In this document: piece by piece, positions 7,219-33,000 of the stretch | Layout: each line of letters starts with the position of its first letter | Position numbering within the stretch: position 1 is the first letter of the stretch | Origin: Laetmonice hystrix | Lineage: Eukaryota | Reading direction: 5' to 3' | Length of the DNA: 33,000 bases | NCBI GenBank assembly: GCA_965235115.1 | Contig: OZ249445.1 | Coordinates: 10,416,001-10,449,000 of the forward strand | Notes under the pieces: model-generated | Told to the model about the DNA's origin: nothing | The model's database searches: none | What the model saw: the letters and a program-made list of their open reading frames with translations, nothing else | Program-made: the position numbers and the translations under genes

Positions 7219-7427
7219 TTCAAAACGTCATGATCAGAACTGCGCGTCAATGCTCTGCTCATGACGTCTTCAAAACGTCATGACCAGAACTGCGCGTCAT
7301 CAATGGTCTGCTCGTGACGTCTTCAAAACGTCATGACCAGAACTGCGCGTCATCAATGGTCTGCTCGTGACGTCTTCAAAACGTCACGAGCGGAACTGCG
7401 CGTCATCAATGCCCTGCTGTTGACGCA
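7219..7427. repeat. Tandem array of about 4 x 53-bp internally palindromic units
   Basis: Unit TTCAAAACGTCATGACCAGAACTGCGCGTCATCAATGGTCTGCTCGTGACGTC starts at 7219 (50-bp variant), 7269, 7322 and 7375. Confidence 0.95.
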
Positions 7428-10400
7428 TTATCAATGTCAGAACATATGACAACCGATTAAGAATAACGAAAGTAAAGGGGGTGAGCCGCTCGAAAAATTG
7501 CCAAGAGTTTGTCTGAACCAATCAACGACGTTACGAAACAGCTTCAACTCTTCAAAGTGCTCTTTTCTACAAGTAGGTGCCCTTTTAGTAGTGAAGCAAA
7601 TAACTGATATGCCCTATATGAGCCCCCTCCCTCTGCTTCCCGTCCTGATTCCCGAGCTATTTACTACGTGCAGCAAGCACTGCCGCATTTGAGGGAAAAC
7701 AGGTGTTCCTAGTCGACGGGGACCCCCCAAAAACCTACTTGATTTGTAATAATCGCAGAAAAAACAGGTACGACTGTACGACTAAGTAATGTTATCCAAA
7801 CAGTATACCGACACCGATGGCCCACCGGCGTATTCTTCTCATCTCCGCGTCCATACCACATCTAAATGTTCTTGGATTTATTTAACAAGGCAACAGACAT
7901 TTAATCTGAGGCCGTTTTAGTTGTGCCTCTTTTACAACCAAAGGTCATCTTCTAGGCAAGATTGCATTGAATACATTTTATAACCTGTCAATCGCAAAGC
8001 TGACGTACCACCTTAAACATCTGCCATGACGATACACCGTGTCATAAGGCCGATAATAAAGTCACCAATGTGACCATATATTCTGAACTGCAGGTTTTAA
8101 CCACCAAATCTGACAACCAATAACCAACTGAAGAAACATGCCATCTACAGGGACTGCAGCCACACGAGCCGGCAGGACGTAGTTCCCTCAACATCATCTG
8201 TCATAATGATAACCGTGTTCCCGAACGTCTAGCAATAGTCAGAAGGGAAAGGGAAGGGTCGAAATATAGGGCCACCCTCGCACAGCCACCCTAGCCGGTG
8301 AAAACGAGAAATGGAAGGAGGTAAGCAAATATTCCGAATATTAGATATTCCAAGAGTCTACATTACACAACCGCTCGACTTTTTAAAGGCATCCCTGACA
8401 CCTGACACATTGATTAGAAAGCTGTTTGTTGGTGCAGTGATCCGGTTTTTGGAGGAGCAGCTGTCGGTAATCATAGGATAAAAAGATATAAATAGCAAAT
8501 CGGTCGTCATTGCCGATCTGTGCGCACATCAGTCACTGATAAATCATGTAGAGGATTAGTGCGAGTTACATCTTCATAATGATAGCACGGTGCCGGGGGC
8601 AGACTGTCGGTCTATACGCCCGGCCGTCTAAAGCTCTCCTACCCATCACATTATGCGTTATGACCCGGTCTGAGCTATAGAACATTCTCAGACACCTCCA
8701 CCGCCCACCTGTTCCATGGTACTCACCACGACTCAAGGTTCCCATCCTACGACAGGTTGTCCTCGTGATTATCAATACTAAAGGATGATACCTTTTACTT
8801 GCTTGCAACATCTGACTGCTTTTCATTTCCGCGGCCGATTCTGAAAATGGGAACTTACTCCAGATCGCAAGGAAATGGTCAGATGCATCACCCTAGACCA
8901 TCAGAACCTTAATTAAAAATAATTAAAAAATAAAATCCAGGAAAAAAATCAACCTCATTTGAAAGCATTTGATGACTTGTGTTTTAGAAGGATATCAACG
9001 TCACTTATAGAAAATGAGCGAATGAGCGGTGAGGGGCCGTAAATATCATCTTGCCCCAACATCTTACACTGCCCCAGCCGTTCCAACTGGCCCGGAAGAC
9101 AAGGCACTGGAGGCTCTACCGACCGCGCTGGAGGACCTCCTCCAGCGGCTGGTGTATCGGAAACCTGGATGTGGTGTTTTTAGAACATTTTGAAAGTGTG
9201 ATCTTTTGAGGCGGGAGTCGACAGCTGGGGCTGTCCCCACGCATCAGCCGCGGCGTGTATGACAGGGATAATTTTATCTCTGCCATGCCGACTGCCTCCT
9301 GCTTGCCCCCTGTTTGCTTGCTGACCTTTGCGAGCCACTGGAAGTGAAGAGGACCCGTAGAGTGAGCAGCAGCGGGCCAGCAAGCCAACACCAGTCAACT
9401 ATTTGGTGGCTGCCCGGTCGGTGGGCAACCGAGCCACCAATGTCCCAAATGGTTGTGCTAAGAAGAACGACGAGCAGCGGGTTTTGATGGTCGAACATGG
9501 TACTACTGAGGGGACAATCAGTCGGTGTCTTTGCAAGCGGGTCGGCAGACTGCGACCTCAGTCCGCCCTCTTCCCCATGGGAGACAATTCACTGAACATG
9601 GACACAAGCACAAGGTCATCACCTGACACACGGGTCCTATCTAGAGATAGTCGCCAGCTGCAGGCCTTGGCGACCAGGTCGGCTCAGACTTGTCGGGTCT
9701 CATGTTTCTTGTTCTTCCCAATCTATTAGTCGCACCGCATCACCTTACTGAGGGTAGAAGCTTCCACTCCCGTCACTGTAACTGTTTTTTCCCGGTGAAA
9801 GGACCGGCAGAGATGTGCAATTAAAATACAGGTGGCACACTGTTAATTCCCAGCTTGATGCTCAGTGTACCGGTAGAATACAGGTGGAATAGTCTTCATC
9901 AGTGATTATCGAGTGTCTTACCTGTCCAACCCAGACATACCTTTCTCAGCCCATTGTTAATGGTAATTTTTCTTTTTTTTCTGCTTGAAAGGTTCAAATC
10001 AAACATACACAACCCCCTTGGCATACCACCCCCCCCCCCCACCCCCTACCCCCCGGCGCAAACCCGGACCCACCATGTGATGTCATATTTTGATTCCAAA
10101 TCTTCATCAGTCGTAAATGTCACTGCCACTGCGATCATTTTTAGTTCGTTCAAACAAACAACTAATTTTGCTTGACACCCTACACTGCCGCACAATCCTC
10201 CCATTCCCAAGGTGAAGCATGAAAGCTAATTTTCAAGGTCCATTATTTTCTGCTCACATCCTGGATTCGGCCTGAATGTTACCGATATGTTTCAGAAAGC
10301 AACCTAAGAGAAAGAAAACGAAAAACAAGATGGTCGGCATAGAGTTACACCATGCCTCAAGTATTAAACCTAGACTGTTGACGACTTCTGGGCTCTTTGT

Positions 10401-11498
10401 TTGCAATTTTACCATCTCAGTCCAACTTTCCGATCGACCTGAAGCCCCGCCATGTGTTGACTATCTCAACAGGACGGTAAGAAACCCAATAAAGGACGCC
10501 ATTAGCTAAATGTACTATTAATACCAACCGGATTCAGGTGAGCGACGAGAAATTTCCCTCCTTCACCTACATGAAATGATGTTTCATACTAAAAAGATTA
10601 GTTTTTTAGAAGTGATTTGCTTTATTACGCTTTGTCTGACAGCTGCGAGGACATGAACCTTGCCTTGCGTTCAACCACTATCCGTTGTATTATACTCTCG
10701 ATGACGTGTGGTGGCGGTGGGGAGTACGGATTATGTAGGGGGGATTGGTGAATTTTTTTTTATTAATGCACCACTTTTATTAATGAAACTATTTTATCGA
10801 CTTGATCTGACACTAATAGTTTCTGTGCAGATAGATCGCCTGAACGTATGCATACTTCGGCGATATATTGACTTCTTTAATTTTAAAATGCCCCACACTT
10901 CACATCCTAACAAGCACAAAGTTATACGGCCACTTATAAGGCTGTGAATGACCTAAGCTTGACCCTTTGACTTTTGTCATGCCCACATACTTTATATTCT
11001 ACCCAAAGGTCCTGCTTGACCGCGCCATGTTGCTTTCCTTCGAGGCCGTATTTTTCGTCCATTTCCCCCACTAACGGGTACACGGGCGGCTCTATGTGTC
11101 ACACATGATGTTATAGTAGGACTGGCTTCTATTCGGAGATATCAAACGTGGCTGGAGTCTACATCCCATAAATTAATCAACCCTAATCCAAGTGTATATT
11201 TTGAACCAGTTTGTACATTATTTATTTCACAAATGTTGTCAGGAACGATACAGATTCCACTTCAAACGATCACGAAGAACCGTTTCCATGGAAACATTCG
11301 GACACTGTTCACTCAAACAGTCCGTTTAATTCACGTATACAGGTTTAATACTTAAGTGCATGGGACCTGATGGGTGCCACCCTGTTGCACTGTGTCCCGG
11401 GCGTGAATTTATTTTTCGTGAACCTTTCGGGCAAATCATGGGACCATTAGCCAATTAAGAACATAGTTGTGACGTCACACTACGCCTGACGCTAATAC

Positions 11499-11529
11499 TA
11501 ACCCTAACCCTCACCTTAACCCTATCCCT
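11499..11529. repeat. Degenerate (TAACCC)n interstitial telomere-type microsatellite
   Basis: TAACCC TAACCC TCACCT TAACCC TATCCC T; five imperfect hexamers. Confidence 0.7.
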
Positions 11530-12020
11530 TTGTATTTGTTCAAACAAATGTCTAAGTCAACTATATAAACCTATATACATTTGTATTCATTCGGAAATAT
11601 GTAAACAGGGGCTCATTGCGTCCGAAAGGTTTCGGGGAGGGGGGGGGGATCACCCCCTGGCCTTTTTTCATAGAATGTATCATCGTATTTTGCCATAACA
11701 TATCGCTTCCCCGCGCGAATATACGTCCCGTGGATGGGAAAGGCGTGATTGTCTGGTATTATATCTCATGTATGATTCCGTGTCATTGTGAGTCTTTATA
11801 GACTGCTTGATTTTCTCATGTCCACGGACTTCACTGTGTCCACCTGTCTTCTGAACTTGAATCCACGCAGCTATGGGCGCATTTATAATGGCTTTGGACA
11901 ATGCTGACATTTTATCACTCCAAAGTAAAATGCACGATTCAACACCCGGCTAAAAATAGCAGCGGATGTGACAAAGACATTTTACTGAAAATCATCGCAA
12001 AATAGTTTTATTCTTGAGAA

Positions 12021-12181
12021 AGACCTTCAGGCTGAACCAGATATCGATAGAGCTGGATATGGGAGCAACGAGTATTTATTCTATACTCGTTGATAGGAGG
12101 AAAGCCTCTTCAGACCTTCAGGCTGAACCAATCATCGATAGAGCTGAGCTGGATACAGGAGGAAAGCCTGTCCAGGCCTTC
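12021..12181. repeat. Imperfect tandem duplication with a perfect hairpin in copy 1
   Basis: AGACCTTCAGGCTGAACCA at 12021 and 12112; AGGAGGAAAGCCT..CAG.CCTTC twice; 10-bp stem CAACGAGTAT (12066-12075) / ATACTCGTTG (12083-12092). Confidence 0.85.
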
Positions 12182-12399
12182 GTTTCGTAAGACTATTACG
12201 TCATATTCCAGAGCTCCTCGGGGTCGTTTCTCACATTACTGCCAACAGGCTGGTCGGGTACATACATCTGAAATTTATACGTTGCACTTCCCAGGCCCGA
12301 CTTTTATGCCTGGCAGTACAACACTGTATTTCAACATCCATATCGTTGGATCGTTAAACCCTTCGCCAAGACCAATGACTATACCCCCAAGAATGACAC

Positions 12400-12427
12400 C
12401 AAAGAACCTCGATATCGAGGTTCTTTG
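12400..12427. repeat. Perfect 28-bp palindrome
   Basis: CAAAGAACCTCGATATCGAGGTTCTTTG is its own reverse complement. Confidence 0.95.
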
Positions 12428-12787
12428 ATGACACTGCATTTCTTTTCGGGTTTAAATCCGGCCGTGACATCGTGTTCTTGTTGCTTGTCACACTAGACAT
12501 TATCTTGCTTTATATTTTTTCACCGAGTAATATTTAATGCCGCGAGCACATTTTACAGCTTGCACTCGTCGCCCGCTCAATCGCGGGAATTCCGTATCAA
12601 ATTTAAACCTGCTCGACTACTGAGTGTGCTGAACTCATACATCTTTAAGGTAATGCCTTTAAATCCAAACTGGGTGCTAATCGATGTTTAACCAGTCACG
12701 CAGCAGTTGTAGTGATGTGATAATTAAATATCAGGTTGAGCCCCAAGAACTAGGCCCACTGAGGTTGGAAATACCACACCACATCTG

Positions 12788-12832
12788 CTACATGTCACGA
12801 ACAATCAACGCTTCATTTAACACCGTCTTTTC
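12788..12832 (-). CDS. Candidate (alternative) terminal exon of the F-BAR gene: EKTVLNEALIVRDM*
   Basis: Acceptor tttttctcatgtag| 128 nt downstream of the 12960 donor; phase 0 matches the preceding exon and reads 14 codons to TAG. No homology support. Confidence 0.35.
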   Translation of the reverse strand, partial: EKTVLNEALIVRDM

Positions 12833-12960
12833 CTACATGAGAAAAACGCTCCAACACCCTTGACAGTTCACGGCGACAGCAGGTAATATTTAATTATTGC
12901 TCTGTGGACTCTGGTACACTGAGCTGAAATGGAAACTAAACCGAAGGTAGAATGACTTAC

Positions 12961-13072
12961 CTGAGCTCGAATGGCTGCGAGTTGCAGATTGGCAACGCGA
13001 ATTTCATTCCTCTTTCGACATAAATCCTCTTGTGTTTCATAAACCTTTGCATGTAAATGATTGGCTAAGTTT
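12961..13072 (-). CDS. F-BAR gene exon 7b (coiled coil): NLANHLHAKVYETQEDLCRKRNEIRVANLQLAAIRAQ
   Basis: Strong acceptor ttttctttccctccttgcgtttgcag|, donor CAG|gtaagt, 112 nt, phase 2 to 0. Its first base completes the AG|A Arg codon left by exon 19347-19501. Heptad-like helical sequence. Confidence 0.85.
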
Positions 13073-13129
13073 CTGCAAACGCAAGGAGGGAAAGAAAACA
13101 GAGGTATCATTAGTATATCTGGTACTTAC

Positions 13130-13217
13130 TCTTTGATCGGGACGGGGCGAAGGAGATGGGGGAGGCAGCGGGGAAGGAGGTTCCTTCTTCTTGGATTCTT
13201 TGTGCTTTTTCGGCATT
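13130..13217 (-). CDS. Candidate alternative exon 7a (Lys/Pro-rich): MPKKHKESKKKEPPSPLPPPSPSPRPDQR
   Basis: Acceptor attgtacag| (weak pyrimidine tract), perfect donor AGA|gtaagt, 88 nt, phase 2 to 0 like exon 7b; open and strongly protein-like; begins with an ATG, so could also be an alternative first exon. Confidence 0.55.
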
Positions 13218-13505
13218 CTGTACAATATTTGCATAGATAACGACGGCAAAACCTGTGTCGTGTGAAGGATAGAAAAACAGTCACATCTTCGCTCAGTTGC
13301 AGTCACATGGTAACGCAACTATAAGCTTGGCGCAGTTGGAAGCCCCAGGACTGTAGAGACTACGGCCCTGTGTCTCTCACTCCTGTATCATCCACTGCTT
13401 AAAACATCCACCGTAGGCAAACCCCCCGAATGGAGAGAATTCAACAAAATACAGTCAAGTCACAGCATCCAGAATGACACATCGGAGATTGCCATCATGT
13501 AAGAT

Positions 13506-14189
13506 AGAGATTCCTACGTGAAGCCTGAAGCAGCCCCTATCGTGGCTGCGTGGCGTGGTGGACATGAGGCAGTCTGAGGATGTCACAGACTCACAGTGGT
13601 CGTTTTCCTGCCCCACCACCGGCAGCACCGCTCCACCACCGGCCACCAACCACCCAACCCACCTGTCGTTAGGCTGGCTGGCCACTACGCTCAGTCGTTG
13701 ACACCGCAAGGACAATCAGAAACCACCTCAGCAGATGGTCTAAAGGCTAACATCCTGGAGATCATTGACCATCAAGGCTCGTCTGAGGTCGCACCAGTTA
13801 GAGCAACAGTAGGAGGATGAGGGGACGGCGCCATCCATCACAAACAGCAGGAACAGCGACATCAGCAGCAGCAGCAGCCACAGCCACAGCAGCAGTGCTC
13901 AGCCCTGGCTATAGTTTACTTCAGGTGTGCAGCGAGTGCCCCTCCCTGCTCCCCTCCCCCTTCCATCAGCGCCCAGCTCTCAGCCTCTGATAGCGCCCCT
14001 CCCACCTGGTCCCCAGTGTCGTCCTCCGTGCCCCCTCAACCCTGTCCTGCTGTCCCAGCCCTCCGTCCAGCACCCCGACCTCCGTCACTTTCTCCACCCC
14101 TCCCGTTCACCCTACCCCCGGAACCCCCTCCCCCGCCACGTGCCACCCTACGCCAGTCACAGCAACCTCACCTACCTGTGGACCTATAG
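13506..14189 (+). pseudogene. Disabled low-complexity reading frame (poly-Gln then Pro/Ser-rich), origin unknown
   Basis: One frame of 228 codons with only two internal TGA stops (13575, 13818); includes HHKQQEQRHQQQQQPQPQQQ and PPQPCPAVPALRPAPRPPSLSPPLPFTLPPEPPPPP. GC-rich low complexity alone lowers stop frequency. Confidence 0.35.
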
Positions 14190-14868
14190 ATACATGTAGC
14201 TTTGTTTTCTACGACCTCCTTTAGTGTATACGTGCGGATGTTATGTGGCCAGCAGGCCAGCAGTAGATTATACAGTACACTCATCATATACAATGTAGCT
14301 TGTTATCTATTTTCTACTCTCACTCCAAGTCCCGTCCCCGCTCTGTTTGAAATGTTATGACGGAGGGGCCAAGCTTGAGACATACTAATAGATCATCCGA
14401 CAGTTCATTAGTGTTACCTACAGGTCAACAGTGTCGGGAAACATTAACTATCAACTGAGAGACTGACTAAAACAAAAGAAGGTATATTCACCGTACTGTG
14501 GCAAGAAAGTTTTAAAATCCTTGGAGAGAAACCAACTGCTAGAATTCATTTATAATTGATCAGCATCACTGATAGCCAGCAGACCACCAGACCTCGATGA
14601 TGTACCCCGGCTATCTATTAGCTGTTCCATACTGCAATGATCAACGTTCATCTGCGATAAAAGGCTGTGTAGACAGCCCCTGGCTACAATGGATGGCTAC
14701 AGGCTGCATGGTTTGACCCACAGTCAAGGCAGTGGTCACATAGCCTCGGCTGTTAATACCTAATACCGTTAATACCGTCTTTGCCGACAGATGTAACCTC
14801 AAACACGACTTCACAATTGATTCGTGCATCAGTAACATTACGTCAGCGTTTCACACTCTGGGGCCAGT

Positions 14869-19346: not shown

Positions 19347-19501
19347 CTCTGACATACATTCATGAGTGTTTGCGTAACATCCTGATTTTGTTTAAGGTAA
19401 GAAGTTAACTCCGACGCCTCACGTTGTAAATCCATTCGTTTGGCCTTTACATTCACTTCTGTATGCCGGTCAAATATTATATGGTCCTTGAGTGTACTGA
19501 G
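19347..19501 (-). CDS. F-BAR gene exon 6: LSTLKDHIIFDRHTEVNVKAKRMDLQREASELTSYLKQNQDVTQTLMNVCQ(R)
   Basis: Acceptor ttttcactgttgtag|, donor GAG|gtaagt, 155 nt, phase 0 to 2, open; resembles the coiled-coil extension (FX-like) that follows the F-BAR in Fes/Fer. Confidence 0.88.
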
Positions 19502-24968: not shown

Positions 24969-27900
24969 ACTGGCAAGGATAAGGGAGGGCGGAGCAGTAA
25001 ACGAACTTAAATCATGCTATTGTGCTTTTTCTCCAATTGATCATATTTTGGTCGGAGGATAAGCTCTTTTGACAGTGGTTGGTATACTTACTATAGGTTG
25101 GGAAACTGCAGTAAAATATAACGGTACACCTTGTGACGCGTCTTTCTGCGTGTCGATACCTCTTGTCAAAGGATCACACCAGCCTTTCAGGACTGGCAGT
25201 AGCACTGTTGGAGGGTGGGGGTGGGGGGCAGTTCTGCCCTATCAGTCTTTGTCGTTCTATCGGAGCTTCTCTTTATTACCTATAAGTATTTGATACGTAC
25301 GGTATGTTGAGTTTCATCACCAAACAGGTATTTTATATCCCTACATTGTTGTCTGTTTTATACAGGAAAAACACCAAAATCTGGTACTGCATCCTTTTCT
25401 TGTCGTTGTCAAAGAAATCAGAAACCAAAACGGAAGATCGGGTTCTAAGTTCAATTCGAGCCACAACCTGACATTTGCCTCACTTGCACATGCTGACTTC
25501 CACATATCGAATTCCGTCGTCACTGCCTGGCGGCCCTGTCGACCGTTACCGATTGTGCCGACACTGGAAGACTCCAAGCCGAGGTGATACGACAAACAAG
25601 GTTTGCGTGAGACTGAGAACAACCCCAGTCTGACCCAGCCACCCATGACAAGTTATGTGTAGTCATGCAACTACCTGCCTATAAATTCCCTCCATCACTG
25701 CCGCCCCTTTTGGCTCATAATTTAAAACATCTACACGATATTAATTGGAGCTGGTACCGAGCCAGACTCTAAGGAAGATGGATCTAGAACCCTTGGCGCT
25801 CCCTCTATGGTCTATTTTCTACGATTTCAACCAACTACATGTACCGGCATCGGCTGCACTGATTGTAACATAAGTCGACTTCAGCATCGGGATCACTTCT
25901 CTGTTTCCGACTTTTTCTTTAGGGCCGTTTTTCATTTTTCTGCGTTCAGATAGTCATTTTTCTGACGAACTTTCTTCCTGTTTTCGCACTGTGACCATGT
26001 AACATAACTAAGCTTTATAATAAAAGAAACTCGATTCTAAGTTACCTGCATGGCTGTCAAGAAAAGTCTCTTCTTACATGCACAGACTGGCCACATTGTT
26101 CTCAGGTGACACTCAGACGGTAAGGTGGCCTTTCTGTCCCCACCACAAAAATCCTTAAGGAACACCGGCACATTGTCATTATAGCACACGTAAAAAATCT
26201 TAGATTGGAGTATTTGTGAATGTGTTCGTTTGGTCATGACTTTAACCTCATTGCATGTCTGACCGACTGATGGGCGCAAATGAACATTGCACATGGCATT
26301 TCCATTGTGAGACAGTAACAACAGTTAGAAAGTCCTGCTATGCCAATTCTACCCTCCATTTTCTTATTTCCGGGTGAGAATTTTTGTCTGAGCATGTACG
26401 GGTCACAGTGAGTTGTCTGAGCGGGCACAGGTCACAGTGCACGTTGACTGAAGGAAAGTCTTGAGGATCGTACAGGTAGCAGGTACACTGTTGTATTGTA
26501 GACAACATGCACACAATGTACAGGTATCATCCGGACAGCTAGACTATGGACGTCGGCAGGAAACATACCGCATACGTTATTATCAGGAACAAAATTAATG
26601 TCATATGAGCGTGCCCTTTGTACAGGTGTGATATGGTTAGAGAATAGCAACAACCTTCACGGGCATCATGATTCGATTGCTTTCCTCCCTTCTACAGGCA
26701 ATGTTCCAATCTGGCCACCAAGACCACTACTTCCATAGTAATATAATAAATAAAAACCACAGCTTCTCTTTGTATCTTATCTAGATGATTTTTTGTGAAG
26801 CTGGGGCTGTTGATTTGTGTGGCGTTCCCAGCTTCTTCGATTGAACGCGGAGGCCTTTGGTGTGTATAATTGATAGATAGCAGCCACAGTAAATGCAATG
26901 AGCTGGTTCCTTGGCAACCGATTGCCCTTTACTGGCAAGATTTGCAGTGCAAAATAGATGTTTTTCGTCCTTAATACAACGGTGCCCCTGATCGCCCGGC
27001 TAATAAGACTTGTAAAAGGCTGCCTACCTTGGCCTTGTAATTACCCAAATCAATCTTAGATTTCATCACCCCGGCAATCCCTTTCTACATTCATGTTTTA
27101 CCTTGAACGTGTGCCATGGATCTCTTCTATAACATAACGTGCTGATGCTCGTCCTCTGAGCTCTTCTTAAAGCTCCTCCAATATTGTATTTAAAGTTCTT
27201 AATCGCTCCTTGCGACGCGCGGTGCTGGTGACATCCGTTACTTCAAAAAGATTAGATCAGTGTCACGTTGCTCACCTATTAATGTCATTAAGTTTTTAGT
27301 GCTGACTTTGATCGTACCTGGGGCCTAGATATCTGGGGCCGATCGGAATGGGTGAGGCCTGTCATCGTGGCAGGGCGGAGGTGGCGGGGGGGGGGGGGGG
27401 GCTTAATATTAGAATGCCGAGCACACGGTAACGTAGGCGGCCGGGCGGCCGGTCCGAGCGGACGACATTGCCATCCGTCGGCCGAGCTTAGTACGGTACT
27501 GGTCTGTCCTACCTCTGGGACACTGGACCTGCTGGCCGTCGGCTGTTTACTGATCGACCGCTCCCCTTCAACATGGGATGTATTTATGCTTTGTCTTAGC
27601 TGTAGACTCTTTCTACAAGCAATCGGCTGAATTATTGTTGCCCCTAACAGGCACTCTGCGGCTTCAGATGCTTCTACCAGATTACACACTGTGTTTGCAG
27701 CAATTGAGGACACTTTGTATGATGCTGGCAGTCTCTCAACCCGCGAGGAGGCCGTCCTCCACTCCGCTGAGTCAGCACTTTATACAAAACCCTTGGAGGT
27801 GACGGGAAAGAGAAGCATTTGGCATTATGTGGCATGGGATTTCAATTCTGGCAGGCAATGGCTTTGATATCGTTCTCGTGAGGCGGATATAAAATCTCCA

Positions 27901-29377: not shown

Positions 29378-30084
29378 CTTTTGACGCCTACCCCTGCCCC
29401 CCAGCCTCCACTCCACATGGTGTCCCATCAGTTGAATCTGGCCAGCTCCCCGCCCCTCATGTCAAGAGTCAGTGACCAGGCAGTGATCGGCTCTTCCCAC
29501 CAGCCCGCTCGGTCATGCCACATCCAGGCCCACTCGTGTGTCTTCATTAGCCGCCGCCGAGCGGCGCTGCAGTCCGATTAGCCGGGGAGGGCCCAGCCCA
29601 GCTCTCCGTTGTCCAGGCCCCACCTGACCGGCACGGCCCGGCTGACAGTGATGAAGATGTTTGCCAAACCTGGTTACATCTTCACACCATGAGCCACGTT
29701 GAGCTGGCAGAGTAAGCTCAACCCCGCTCTCCTCGCTCATGAATGGAGAAGTCCTTCTGGTCACTGCGATCGTGAGGGTTTTAAACCTTCAAACGGTAGG
29801 ATGCCTTTGAAACCTCTCACTCTGAATGAAAATCTAGAAATCATTTATGACTCCAATGGTTCTTTTTGGTGTTATTCAGGAGTATGATATGATTTCTACC
29901 ACTTCATAAGCTAGCTGGGCATGTCTAGGATGAGATAACGGTTATATGATAGGATTAGACGATATCTCTTGCATAATCGTTCAGTCAGGTTAGACTCGTT
30001 GATCCTTGAGGAATCAATTATGTGCGCCGAGGGACGTGAACTTACAGCGACACTCATAAAACATGTCATCCCTATGTGAGGGAA

Positions 30085-30510
30085 GTTAGGGGGCGTTAGG
30101 GGAGACGTTAGGGGTGACGTTAGGGGAGACGTTAGGGGAGACGTTGTGGAGACGTTAGGGGTAACGTTAGGGGTAACGTTAGGGGTGACGTTGTGGAGAC
30201 GTTAGGGGTGACGTTGGGGAGACATTAGGGGTGACGTTGTGGAGACGTTAGGGGTGACGTTGGGGAGACGTTAGGGGTGACGTTGTGGAGACGTTAGGGG
30301 TGACATTGGGGAGACGTTAGGGGTGACGTTGGGGAGACGTTAGGGGTGACGTTGGGGAGACGTTAGGGGTGACGTTGGGGAGACGTTAGGGGTGACGTTA
30401 GGGGTGACGTTGTGGAGACGTTAGGGGTGACGTTGGGGAGACATTAGGGGTGACGTTGGGGAGACGTTAGGGGTGACGTTGGGGAGACGTTAGGGGTGAC
30501 GTTGGGGAGG
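30085..30510 (+). repeat. G-rich telomere-like minisatellite (11-12-bp monomers)
   Basis: About 37 monomers TTAGGGGTGACG / TTGGGGAGACG / TTGTGGAGACG, mostly alternating as a 23-bp dimer. Confidence 0.95.
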
Positions 30511-33000
30511 TGTACCGGTAACGTGATGGTCGACCAGTAAGGCAGGTGTCAGTGATGGGGCCGGGCCGACTGATATATGAATACACCCACCCACACTTCG
30601 CCATACGAGCCCATTATAAATGATGACGGTCTGACGTATTATAACGGTATCAGAAGAGGTGGTTAATGACGTCTGGTAAAGGCCGTGAGAACTTAAAACC
30701 GTTTCCAGTTCCACCTTTGAATTACACATGTATGTATGTAGGGATATCGTGATAATTTGCTCACGCCTTGTAAGGGGTCCATCAGTAAACATAGAAGGTG
30801 AAATTGAATAAGCTTGGGGAATGGTAAGCAGCATGCTTAATGCCAATTAGTTCAGTATAGGGAAATTCAACCGGTGCCCTGCTTGGAGAGTTTTGAATCA
30901 ATTCTATTACCGGTTAGTATTTTGTATGGCAAAACATACGGGAATATCCTTGCTGGTTTCAATGTCTCATCATGGTTTTGTTAATGTTTTGTTAACCTTT
31001 CCAACACTGGTGCTACTGATGCTTTATGCTGTTCTAATCCCATTCATTGCCCCAAGTGAGCACTACAGCTGATTGGAACTGTCTAATCATCTTGGTTCGT
31101 CCATGCCTGGAGCAACATCATCAGAGGCCAAGCCTTGCAGGAGCCCTTTCCCGTCTAAACTTTAGAGAACGTCACTGAGCAGTATAAGGGCACTGAATAG
31201 GCACCAGGCTACCTCTGTGACGAGCACGAAATAAAATCCAGCTAATTACTACTGCAATATCAAACCATACAGTGCAACGAGAGACCAGCATTGGGGAAGT
31301 CTCTTTCTGATAATTGTCTTGTAAATTAAAAAGATAGATTGACGACATAATAGTGACGAAAATTTAAAAAAAAGAACAATGAATCAATCAATAATCGTAG
31401 TTTTCCAAATGAAAAAAAAAACAATTAGAATGTAATTATGTAATGTTTTATGTTATTTTGGAAACTGAATGAAGTAGGCGTCAGCTTGTTACACGTTTTC
31501 CCGCCTGATCATGTCACCTATTCGCCTGTCCAGGAAACCGACATCATGCGATATCTCGATCTCTGATCACTCCAGACATGATGCGATTACCTCTAATTTT
31601 GATGAATGACATACAAAGGCCACATAAGTACTTCACTAAAAATGTCTCAGGAGACACTGTCTGTTTGAGTTCACTGCATATGATGAATGCATCAATACTC
31701 CGGCTACCTGACCTGCATAAAATGTTTCCAACTTTTATATCAGTAGTTCAGTAGTTGACATTGGTGTGACAACGTCAAAGGATATGGCATGCAGAGGCAC
31801 TCCAGCGAATCCTCAGTTAAGCCTATTTTATCTTTATAAAGCGGCTTTAAAGAGGCGTTTCACACTAATAAACCTTGTCACACTTCAAATCAAACATGGA
31901 AAGGCGAATTTCAATGCAAGGCACATTCAAAAACTCTCAATCTTGTAACAGGTTAACTGAACAAAATTTATTTGACGTTATGTTATTGGTTGATCTGAAG
32001 GGTTTTTTTTTTCTCTCTCTCTCAGAAATGCGAGTTTTAACATGCCAGATTACCTCTTGTGCTGTAGATTCCCATTCCTTTCAATTGGACCCCTGAATGT
32101 TTCAGAGAGTGACAATTCAGTATTTTGAAAACAAACATCAATACAAATATCCACATTCTCTCCTTCCACGCTATTATCGCCAGGAAAGTTTAAATGATCA
32201 TGATCGTGATTTACATTTATGTTGCGTCCAGCAGTCAGGCTCTCTAATTATTCACAAATGTTTACTTTGCACAGTACTCAAATCGTTAACGAAAAAAACG
32301 CAACCATTTATGTCACCAGCCGCCATACGCTAAAAGGCCTGACACGCCCACTACACACACGTTCACCAAAATTAAAAATAAAGAAATGATAATAACAACG
32401 CAACATCTCAATACTCTTTGACAGGCCATGTCAGCGATGGAGAATGGGAACAAACAAAAGCTAATCAGTAGAAAGGAAAAGCAGCTGCAAATCAACTCCT
32501 GTAGCAAAAACAGTGGTGGAGGGGGCAATCATGGCAAGCAATTATACACGCTGGAAACTGCCCACCTGACAGGCCTGGTAATGCAGTTGCCCTGTACGCC
32601 AGCTGGGCTCGTGGTCTCCAGCAGGCAATCAACAAGACACTACCCATAGCGGCCAACAACGCCGCATGAATGGGCATCCCGCCTCCAACCTCCGCCGTGC
32701 CAGACAACCACTCCTCAACATCAAGCTGCTATTTACGTGTCAGATATTTTTATCCCGAATGACAGCTTTTGTCAATGTCCCCAAATTTATATCAGGCAGG
32801 CAAAAGTCGGTGGCCATCACGTGACATTTTATATCACGGAAAGGGCTGTCAGTGAGAACCAATCAAAAGGGTAAGCCCCACATTTCTGTCAGAAAACTCG
32901 CCAGGCAAACCTGGCGCTGTTCTTTTGCATACTTTTTTTTCTATTTCTTAAAAAAAAAAATCCCGCTACCTGGAGATGACATGGACCGAGCTCACGTTGC

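Follow-up and report, generated by a model that had tools for sequence, protein, structure and literature searches.

How can two adjacent exons that are unrelated in sequence be kept from appearing in the same transcript? The question is raised by a locus of Laetmonice hystrix (GenBank assembly GCA_965235115.1, contig OZ249445.1), where the window, meaning the whole stretch of 33,000 nucleotides analysed here (positions 10,416,001 to 10,449,000 of the forward strand), contains a highly conserved exon, 7b, and immediately upstream of it a candidate exon, 7a. An earlier note had proposed that the two are mutually exclusive on steric grounds, the 7a donor being too near the branch point of 7b for the interval between them to be spliced. 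Our reading, to which we assign a probability of about 0.5, is that 7a may be a genuine alternative exon and, if so, one that must bypass 7b.

Anatomy and Reading Frame

The gene carrying both exons lies on the minus strand, and when all coordinates given for it previously were re-read against the sequence, they matched. The features on which the argument turns, numbered from the first base of the window, are as follows.

19347..19501, minus strand: exon 6, ending ...ELTSYLKQNQDVTQTLMNVCQ + AG; located by tblastn with the Tubulanus orthologue P0009 (71% identity) and by splice-site context
13130..13217, minus strand: candidate exon 7a, 88 nt, coding A + MPKKHKESKKKEPPSPLPPPSPSPRPDQR; read from the sequence
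13073..13129, minus strand: interval between 7a and 7b, 57 nt, with TACTAAT and a pyrimidine tract
12961..13072, minus strand: exon 7b, 112 nt, coding A + NLANHLHAKVYETQEDLCRKRNEIRVANLQLAAIRAQ; found in every orthologue and isoform examined
13037..13039, minus strand: TGA reached when 7a and 7b are included together, reading KLSQSFTCKGL*

Exon 6 probably begins near 19501, judging by a tag| acceptor, and ends at 19347 in phase 2 (...TGT CAG AG|gtaagt). Because it ends in AG, the first A of either 7a or 7b completes an AGA codon. Exon 7a opens at 13217 behind the acceptor tattgtacag|A and closes after 13130 with the donor AGA|GTAAGT, and exon 7b is bounded by the acceptor gtttgcag|AAAC at 13072 and by the donor CAG|gtaagt after 12961. 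Following exon 6, 7a alone reads R MPKKHKESKKKEPPSPLPPPSPSPRPDQR and 7b alone reads R NLANHLHAKVYETQEDLCRKRNEIRVANLQLAAIRAQ, each ending in phase 0. Exon 8, which lies at contig position 10,406,718, 22.2 kb downstream in the same genome and thus beyond the end of the window, likewise starts in phase 0 (tgtccag|ATT GAG TTG, coding IELLSPKQNG). Since 88 and 112 nt are both of the form 3n+1, with exon 6 in phase 2 and exon 8 in phase 0, either exon alone keeps the frame, and both or neither would break it. The interchangeability originally described, with its two exon lengths and its stop on joint inclusion, therefore stands, as does the description of 7a as basic and then proline-rich, which agrees with the translated sequence. 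In fact, the observation as a whole (anatomy, phases and spacing) is confirmed as accurate. Exon 7a is single-copy, and the gene has no paralogue in the genome.

Taken alone, the frame compatibility of 7a does not exceed chance. Intron 6 is 6274 nt long and holds six AG..GT pseudo-exons that have a donor score of at least 7/9, are open in the right phase, and are 3n+1 in length. Moreover, none of the three reading frames of 7a contains a stop, and the pyrimidine tract of its acceptor is moderate (0.53–0.56). All of this speaks for a chance pseudo-exon, where TACTAAT and the downstream tract would merely serve the constitutive exon 7b, and where GTAAGT and the open frame would be fortuitous products of a C-rich composition with few stops. 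We regard such an origin as rather unlikely; what goes beyond chance is the recurrence of the 7a-donor layout in other lineages, described below.

Identity of the Gene and Role of Exon 7b

The best full-length relative is LOC141913058 of Tubulanus polymorphus (P0009, 798 aa), with 58% identity over the mapped exons. It possesses an FCH/F-BAR domain and C-terminal SH3 domains only, with neither SH2 nor kinase. The PDB matches of its SH3 region are to STAC, GRB2 and similar proteins, the nearest being the tandem SH3 domains of STAC3, STAC and STAC2. Downstream exons of the gene in the window's own genome match the linker and SH3 region of P0009, and relatives carry the RefSeq names “nostrin-like” or uncharacterised. 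The gene is thus, by sequence, an uncharacterised lophotrochozoan “nostrin-like” adaptor with an F-BAR domain, a helical extension, a disordered linker and a C-terminal SH3 region. NOSTRIN/CIP4-type adaptors show the same domain order (F-BAR, helical hairpin, linker, C-terminal SH3), but here the disordered linker is long and the closest SH3 domains are those of STAC3, STAC and STAC2 rather than that of NOSTRIN. A search of the literature found no paper on this lophotrochozoan gene family.

An identity as Fes/Fer was considered and rejected: these kinases have an SH2 and a tyrosine-kinase domain after the F-BAR, whereas the orthologues here end in STAC-like tandem SH3 domains. Consequently, the comparison with FerT offered previously, in which an internal promoter yields an F-BAR-less isoform much as was proposed for 7a, holds as a loose analogy only. 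The gene is not Fes/Fer, but the F-BAR fold is FES-like and an internal first exon is still the favoured reading of 7a (see below).

In the AlphaFold model of P0009:61-446 (pLDDT 85), helices occupy 5-251 and are followed by a hairpin, 286-329 plus 333-367. The best PDB matches of the model are the srGAP2 F-BARx and the FES F-BAR (E ~5e-9), with which the N-terminal fold aligns over ~380 columns, and the match to FES presumably takes in the FES FX extension as well. On this model, the hairpin of the F-BAR extension is predicted to have its first helix (orthologue helix 286-329) coded by exon 6, and its turn and second helix (orthologue helix 333-367, pLDDT ~90) by 7b, in keeping with the claim that 7b is helical. 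Few parts of the protein are as well conserved as exon 7b, which has many invariant columns. It was present in each of the more than 100 orthologues and isoforms examined, among them sets that include RNA-seq-based RefSeq models from Lineus (10), octopus (9, Octopus bimaculoides), oysters and Haliotis, and also in mussels, scallops and a flatworm.

Spacing Between Donor and Branch Point

The case for exclusivity rests on the 57-nt interval. TACTAAT occupies 13115-13109, and its candidate branch A, 13110, is intron position 20, the distance from the 7a donor given in the original description. Other A residues of the interval are confined to positions 3-25 and 56, none falling between +26 and +55, so that the 3′ part, up to the acceptor CAG, is a 31-nt tract free of A and containing just two G. 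The predicted donor-to-branch distance is accordingly 20 nt, and at most 25 nt. A threshold of ~50 nt has been proposed for the steric conflict between donor and branch point in vertebrates (PMC7969005), and in C. elegans introns shorter than ~40 nt are not excised (PMC4165533). The in silico distance falls below both limits, and these agree with the steric idea. In this genome, 17 introns sampled between adjacent myosin-head exon matches measured ~94-327 nt by rough estimate, the shortest being of some 95-130 nt, and none was near 57 nt. By its sequence, then, the interval probably cannot be excised.

This kind of crowding has well-studied precedents. In alpha-tropomyosin exons 2/3 and in OGDH exons 4a/4b, the downstream branch point likewise lies too near the upstream 5′ splice site. 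For alpha-tropomyosin the donor-branch distance is reportedly 41 nt, a figure attributed to Smith and Nadal-Ginard (1989). For OGDH it is 25-41 nt, against the threshold of ~50 nt (PMC7969005). Those pairs differ from the present one in that their members are duplicates of one another, backed by lariat mapping and by evidence from RNA, whereas 7a and 7b are unrelated in sequence and form a candidate pair predicted from the genome; furthermore, the upstream exon here may be a first exon. Invertebrate exclusivity has also been ascribed to a sub-minimal intron, as in C. elegans egl-15 5B/5A, let-2 9/10, bet-2, gly-5 and gly-6, and 7 of the 29 mutually exclusive clusters of that species are not homologous pairs (PMC4165533). 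The introns of these clusters are 14-30 nt long against a minimum of ~40 nt, in contrast to 57 nt here against sampled introns of at least ~94 nt.

The same spacing bears on a further explanation, that 7a is a poison cassette. Exon 6 would be joined to 7a and 7a to 7b, with the 57-nt intron removed, and the stop at 13039-13037 would send the transcript to nonsense-mediated decay. A length of 88 nt, indivisible by three, and a stop lying over 50 nt ahead of the next junction would suit this role. Against it, every candidate branch-point A lies within 25 nt of the donor, the sampled introns are far longer than the interval (at least ~94 nt), and the corresponding interval in oyster is only 40 nt; we consider it very improbable.

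The 7b acceptor has a single plausible branch point, 20 nt from the GTAAGT donor of 7a; if 7a is instead a genuine alternative exon, that donor would be unable to pair with 7b. Blocked from 7b and also out of phase with it, the donor would join exon 8 in frame, and 7a transcripts would therefore skip 7b. The predicted product would have the second helix of the F-BAR extension replaced by a disordered segment, first lysine-rich and then proline-rich.

Candidate Exon 7a: Known Proteins and a Related Organism

A protein search with the 7a open reading frame (93 aa) gave no match at E <=1, and among the more than 100 relatives and isoforms there was neither a 7a-like segment nor an isoform without 7b. 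Searches of Pfam with exon fragments and upstream ORFs returned nothing meaningful, and an ESM Atlas search with the oyster upstream ORF gave no usable match. The proposal of a sterically enforced exclusive pair is consequently sustained in its anatomy, frame logic and spacing, but not by the known isoforms, all of which keep 7b. The lack of any protein resembling 7a, together with the universal presence of 7b, is a further point in favour of a chance pseudo-exon.

Sequencing runs over 7601-13600 comprised contiguous DNA contigs of the same species (X1-X3) and one from a related organism B (X5); no splice joint showed up in any of them. In organism B, 7b and its pyrimidine tract are ~94% identical at the nucleotide level. 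The 7a donor and TACTAAT are also kept, the 30 bases upstream reading CA|GTAAGTACC..TATACTAAT with 20 of 23 bases identical. The body of 7a, on the other hand, is less than 90% identical, giving no alignment at >=90%. The conservation of 7a in relatives, which the earlier note had named as a check on its proposal, is thus seen in the donor and branch motif but not, at that level, in the exon body. Retention of the donor and branch motif counts against a chance origin, and the divergence of the body counts for one, as does the segregation of a 6-nt indel and a non-synonymous polymorphism in the branch motif of the interval and in 7a, respectively. These two variants, which are haplotype differences within the same individual or sample, are:

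13110: TATATA inserted inside the branch motif in a second haplotype (X2/X3)
13138, minus-strand gene: C>T polymorphism as read on the plus strand (runs X2/X3); translated in frame with 7a, a GAT-to-AAT change that replaces Asp by Asn

On the TATATA haplotype, the distance to the candidate branch A is at most +31.

Recurrence of the Crowded Donor in Other Lineages

The comparison took in the window and the 7b-bearing genomic contigs of eight other lineages, L001-L007 having been obtained via ORF matches, with Tubulanus as L018 and Magallana gigas as L019. Of these nine, five have a GTRAG donor 40-81 nt 5′ of the 7b acceptor, where the background rate is 0.117 (binomial P 0.0018):

Window: donor GTAAGT, 57 nt upstream of 7b, phase-0 ORF of 63 codons
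L001: donor GTAAGT, 62 nt upstream of 7b, phase-0 ORF of 22 codons
L004: donor GTGAGT, 81 nt upstream of 7b, phase-0 ORF of 89 codons
Tubulanus (L018): donor GTAAGT, 75 nt upstream of 7b, phase-0 ORF of 39 codons
Oyster (L019): donor GTGAGA, 40 nt upstream of 7b, phase-0 ORF of 153 codons

The phase-0 ORFs at these five donors are longer than those at 459 other GTRAG sites, where the median is 12 codons (Fisher P 3e-4, or 1e-3 with the window removed); both cross-species tests were framed post hoc, after the pattern had been seen. In four of the five lineages, the longest local ORF is the phase-0 one, the phase that fits exon 8; the window's species, oyster and Tubulanus all have an exon 8 that begins in this phase. 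The donor follows position 39170 of L018 in Tubulanus, with exon 8 at about 49118, and position 21808 of L019 (GCA_963853765.1, OY970749.1) in oyster, with exon 8 at 25396. All five ORFs have an in-frame ATG and are rich in Ser, Lys and Arg. That of oyster runs for 133 codons from its ATG to ...DMDDSNQ and ends at the CAG|GTGAGA donor 40 nt from 7b, and that of Tubulanus ends MLRSSSSKSSKKSSSKEGSSRRRAHKQPANPD|GTAAGT. Counting all lineages with analogous ATG-bearing ORFs upstream of 7b gives L001, L004, L005, L006, L018 and L019. Of these, L006 (Haliotis-like) and L005 share the layout but have weaker donors, and both are biased examples because they were found through ORFs reading into 7b. No such upstream exon layout occurs in L002/L003 or L007.

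The donor counts and the long phase-0 ORFs are the main evidence against a chance pseudo-exon. The occurrence of a similar upstream ORF and donor near 7b in several distant lineages makes the layout appear old, and this recurrence is what suggests that 7a is probably a real alternative exon.

The peptides of the upstream ORFs share composition, with no demonstrable homology. In L006 and L004, the best local nucleotide alignments of 7a fall at the syntenic position, but with scores of 15 and 13 they are barely above a background of 12, and nucleotide homology of 7a with these relatives is not claimed; a global alignment of 7a with L001 beat shuffles, under a lenient control. A search in the relatives for an acceptor in phase with these ORFs turned up no good candidate, and no annotated isoform uses them. 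A steric block is also not assured in Tubulanus, since its 75-nt interval contains CTTAAC 61 nt from the donor.

That the donor motif and its position are conserved best, rather than the peptide, and that no annotated isoform uses the donor, would also be expected of a U1 snRNP-binding site. Placed beside the 7b branch point, where it might for instance act as a decoy or hinder U2 from binding, such a site could tune the recognition of 7b or the removal of intron 6, the ORFs being incidental. This would leave unexplained the in-frame ATGs, as well as the 153-codon ORF of oyster and the 89-codon ORF of L004 that end at the donor in the phase of exon 8, and we think it quite unlikely, whether as decoy or as block.

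Possible Entry into Exon 7a and F-BAR-Less Isoforms

Returning to 7a as an exon that bypasses 7b, it could be entered in two ways. In the first, an internal promoter would make 7a a first exon, and translation would start at the ATG at 13216-13214, which is in frame with exon 8 and opens a frame running through the 7a donor; a further ATG lies at 13237-13235. The product would lack the F-BAR domain and read MPKK...PDQR + IELLSPKQNG..., followed by the SH3 domains. The second is splicing from exon 6, for which the window has a usable cag|A acceptor at 7a, so that 7a would be a true cassette. Given that 7a is used, the internal first exon is the route we would expect, with a modest degree of confidence, and the cassette is the somewhat less likely one. 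The first exon is favoured because the upstream ORFs of the relatives have an ATG and no convincing in-phase acceptor. When the doubt about 7a itself is included, its use as a first exon can be put forward only tentatively, and its use as a cassette is unlikely. Both the transcription and splicing of 7a and the start site of such a transcript are predictions from the genomic sequence.

Two facts from relatives fit the first-exon reading. One is a spliced cuttlefish RNA contig, L008 (P0122), in which an ATG-bearing sequence that is not 7b is joined directly to exon 8, giving MEESSKQ|IEVLSPNHNG. The join is rated a possible exon–exon junction, since a strong pyrimidine tract precedes exon 8 at its real acceptors; the 725 nt of A-rich sequence before exon 8 (L008 1-725) ends in ATGGAGGAAAGTTCTAAGCAG, with no such tract. 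It may represent an alternative 5′ exon or else an unusual case of intron retention. The other is that the oyster annotation holds F-BAR-less products of the gene, which start further downstream than 7a would. In Magallana gigas, an alternative exon at L019 30207-30389 codes MWKKVVQKLKLN..., which resembles the MWKKAFKSLK motif of exon 8, and the MWKKVVQKLKLN exon is used by the older Crassostrea virginica ‘STAC2-like’ models P0108 and P0110, giving F-BAR-less isoforms.

Alternative coding sequence is also known from the corresponding intron of cephalopods. Octopus and cuttlefish isoforms P0037, P0038 and P0039 carry a Ser/Pro/His-rich cassette of 55-208 residues between exon 6 and 7b, and since this intron is homologous to the 6.3-kb intron of the window, it is evidently a site of alternative coding exons in the family. 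The cephalopod cassettes match the phase of 7b and always occur together with it, unlike 7a, which is out of phase with 7b. No counterpart of them was found in intron 6 of the window.

The sequence around 7a offered no CpG island, the observed/expected CpG being 0.47-0.67 at 13001-14000. A few hundred bases 5′ of 7a, the stretch 13500-14200 is rich in G runs, with a GC content of 0.59 and an observed/expected CpG of 0.47, and it too does not qualify as a CpG island.

Finally, it is conceivable that the arrangement is Lophotrochozoa-wide, so that in the window's species, a nemertean, an oyster and probably others an internal-promoter first exon is held 40-81 nt from the 7b acceptor and is thereby forced onto exon 8. 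This broader proposal is speculative and may well prove wrong. A conserved steric bypass of this type would couple promoter choice to the loss of half a helical hairpin, and would produce an SH3 adaptor that lacks the F-BAR and has a basic N-terminus bearing PxxP.

Significance

The steric mechanism is of a known kind; what is new is the gene, the non-homologous nature of the pair, and the apparent conservation of the crowding. Should 7a be used, the locus would offer a compact natural test of the spliceosome's steric rule outside vertebrates, flies and nematodes, in a non-homologous pair that seems to have retained its crowded spacing in lineages very far apart. A second product of this uncharacterised and highly conserved F-BAR/SH3 adaptor would come to light as well. 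That product would be without the membrane-sculpting module, or at the least without the extension helix, and would have gained a basic segment rich in proline, which could interact with membranes or with the SH3 domains of the same protein. Should 7a not be used, the interval is an ordinary branch point beside a chance ORF.

Other Features of the Window

Several repeats lie elsewhere in the window. At 30085-30509, a minisatellite consists of ~18 copies of a 23-nt unit (GTTAGGGGTGACGTTGGGGAGAC), is G-rich on the plus strand, and accounts for the GC-skew spike at 30001-31000. A 53-nt unit is repeated in tandem at 7219-7425, in the 22-kb intron 3′ of 7b; there are 4 copies, with 91% matches. High-copy repeats are present at 9963-10017 and 11434-11612, where the depth of the DNA-run contigs rises from ~40-60 to thousands, with many loose ends. 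These are probably transposon or satellite fragments, and the second of them, near position 11.5 kb, is abundant in organism B as well.
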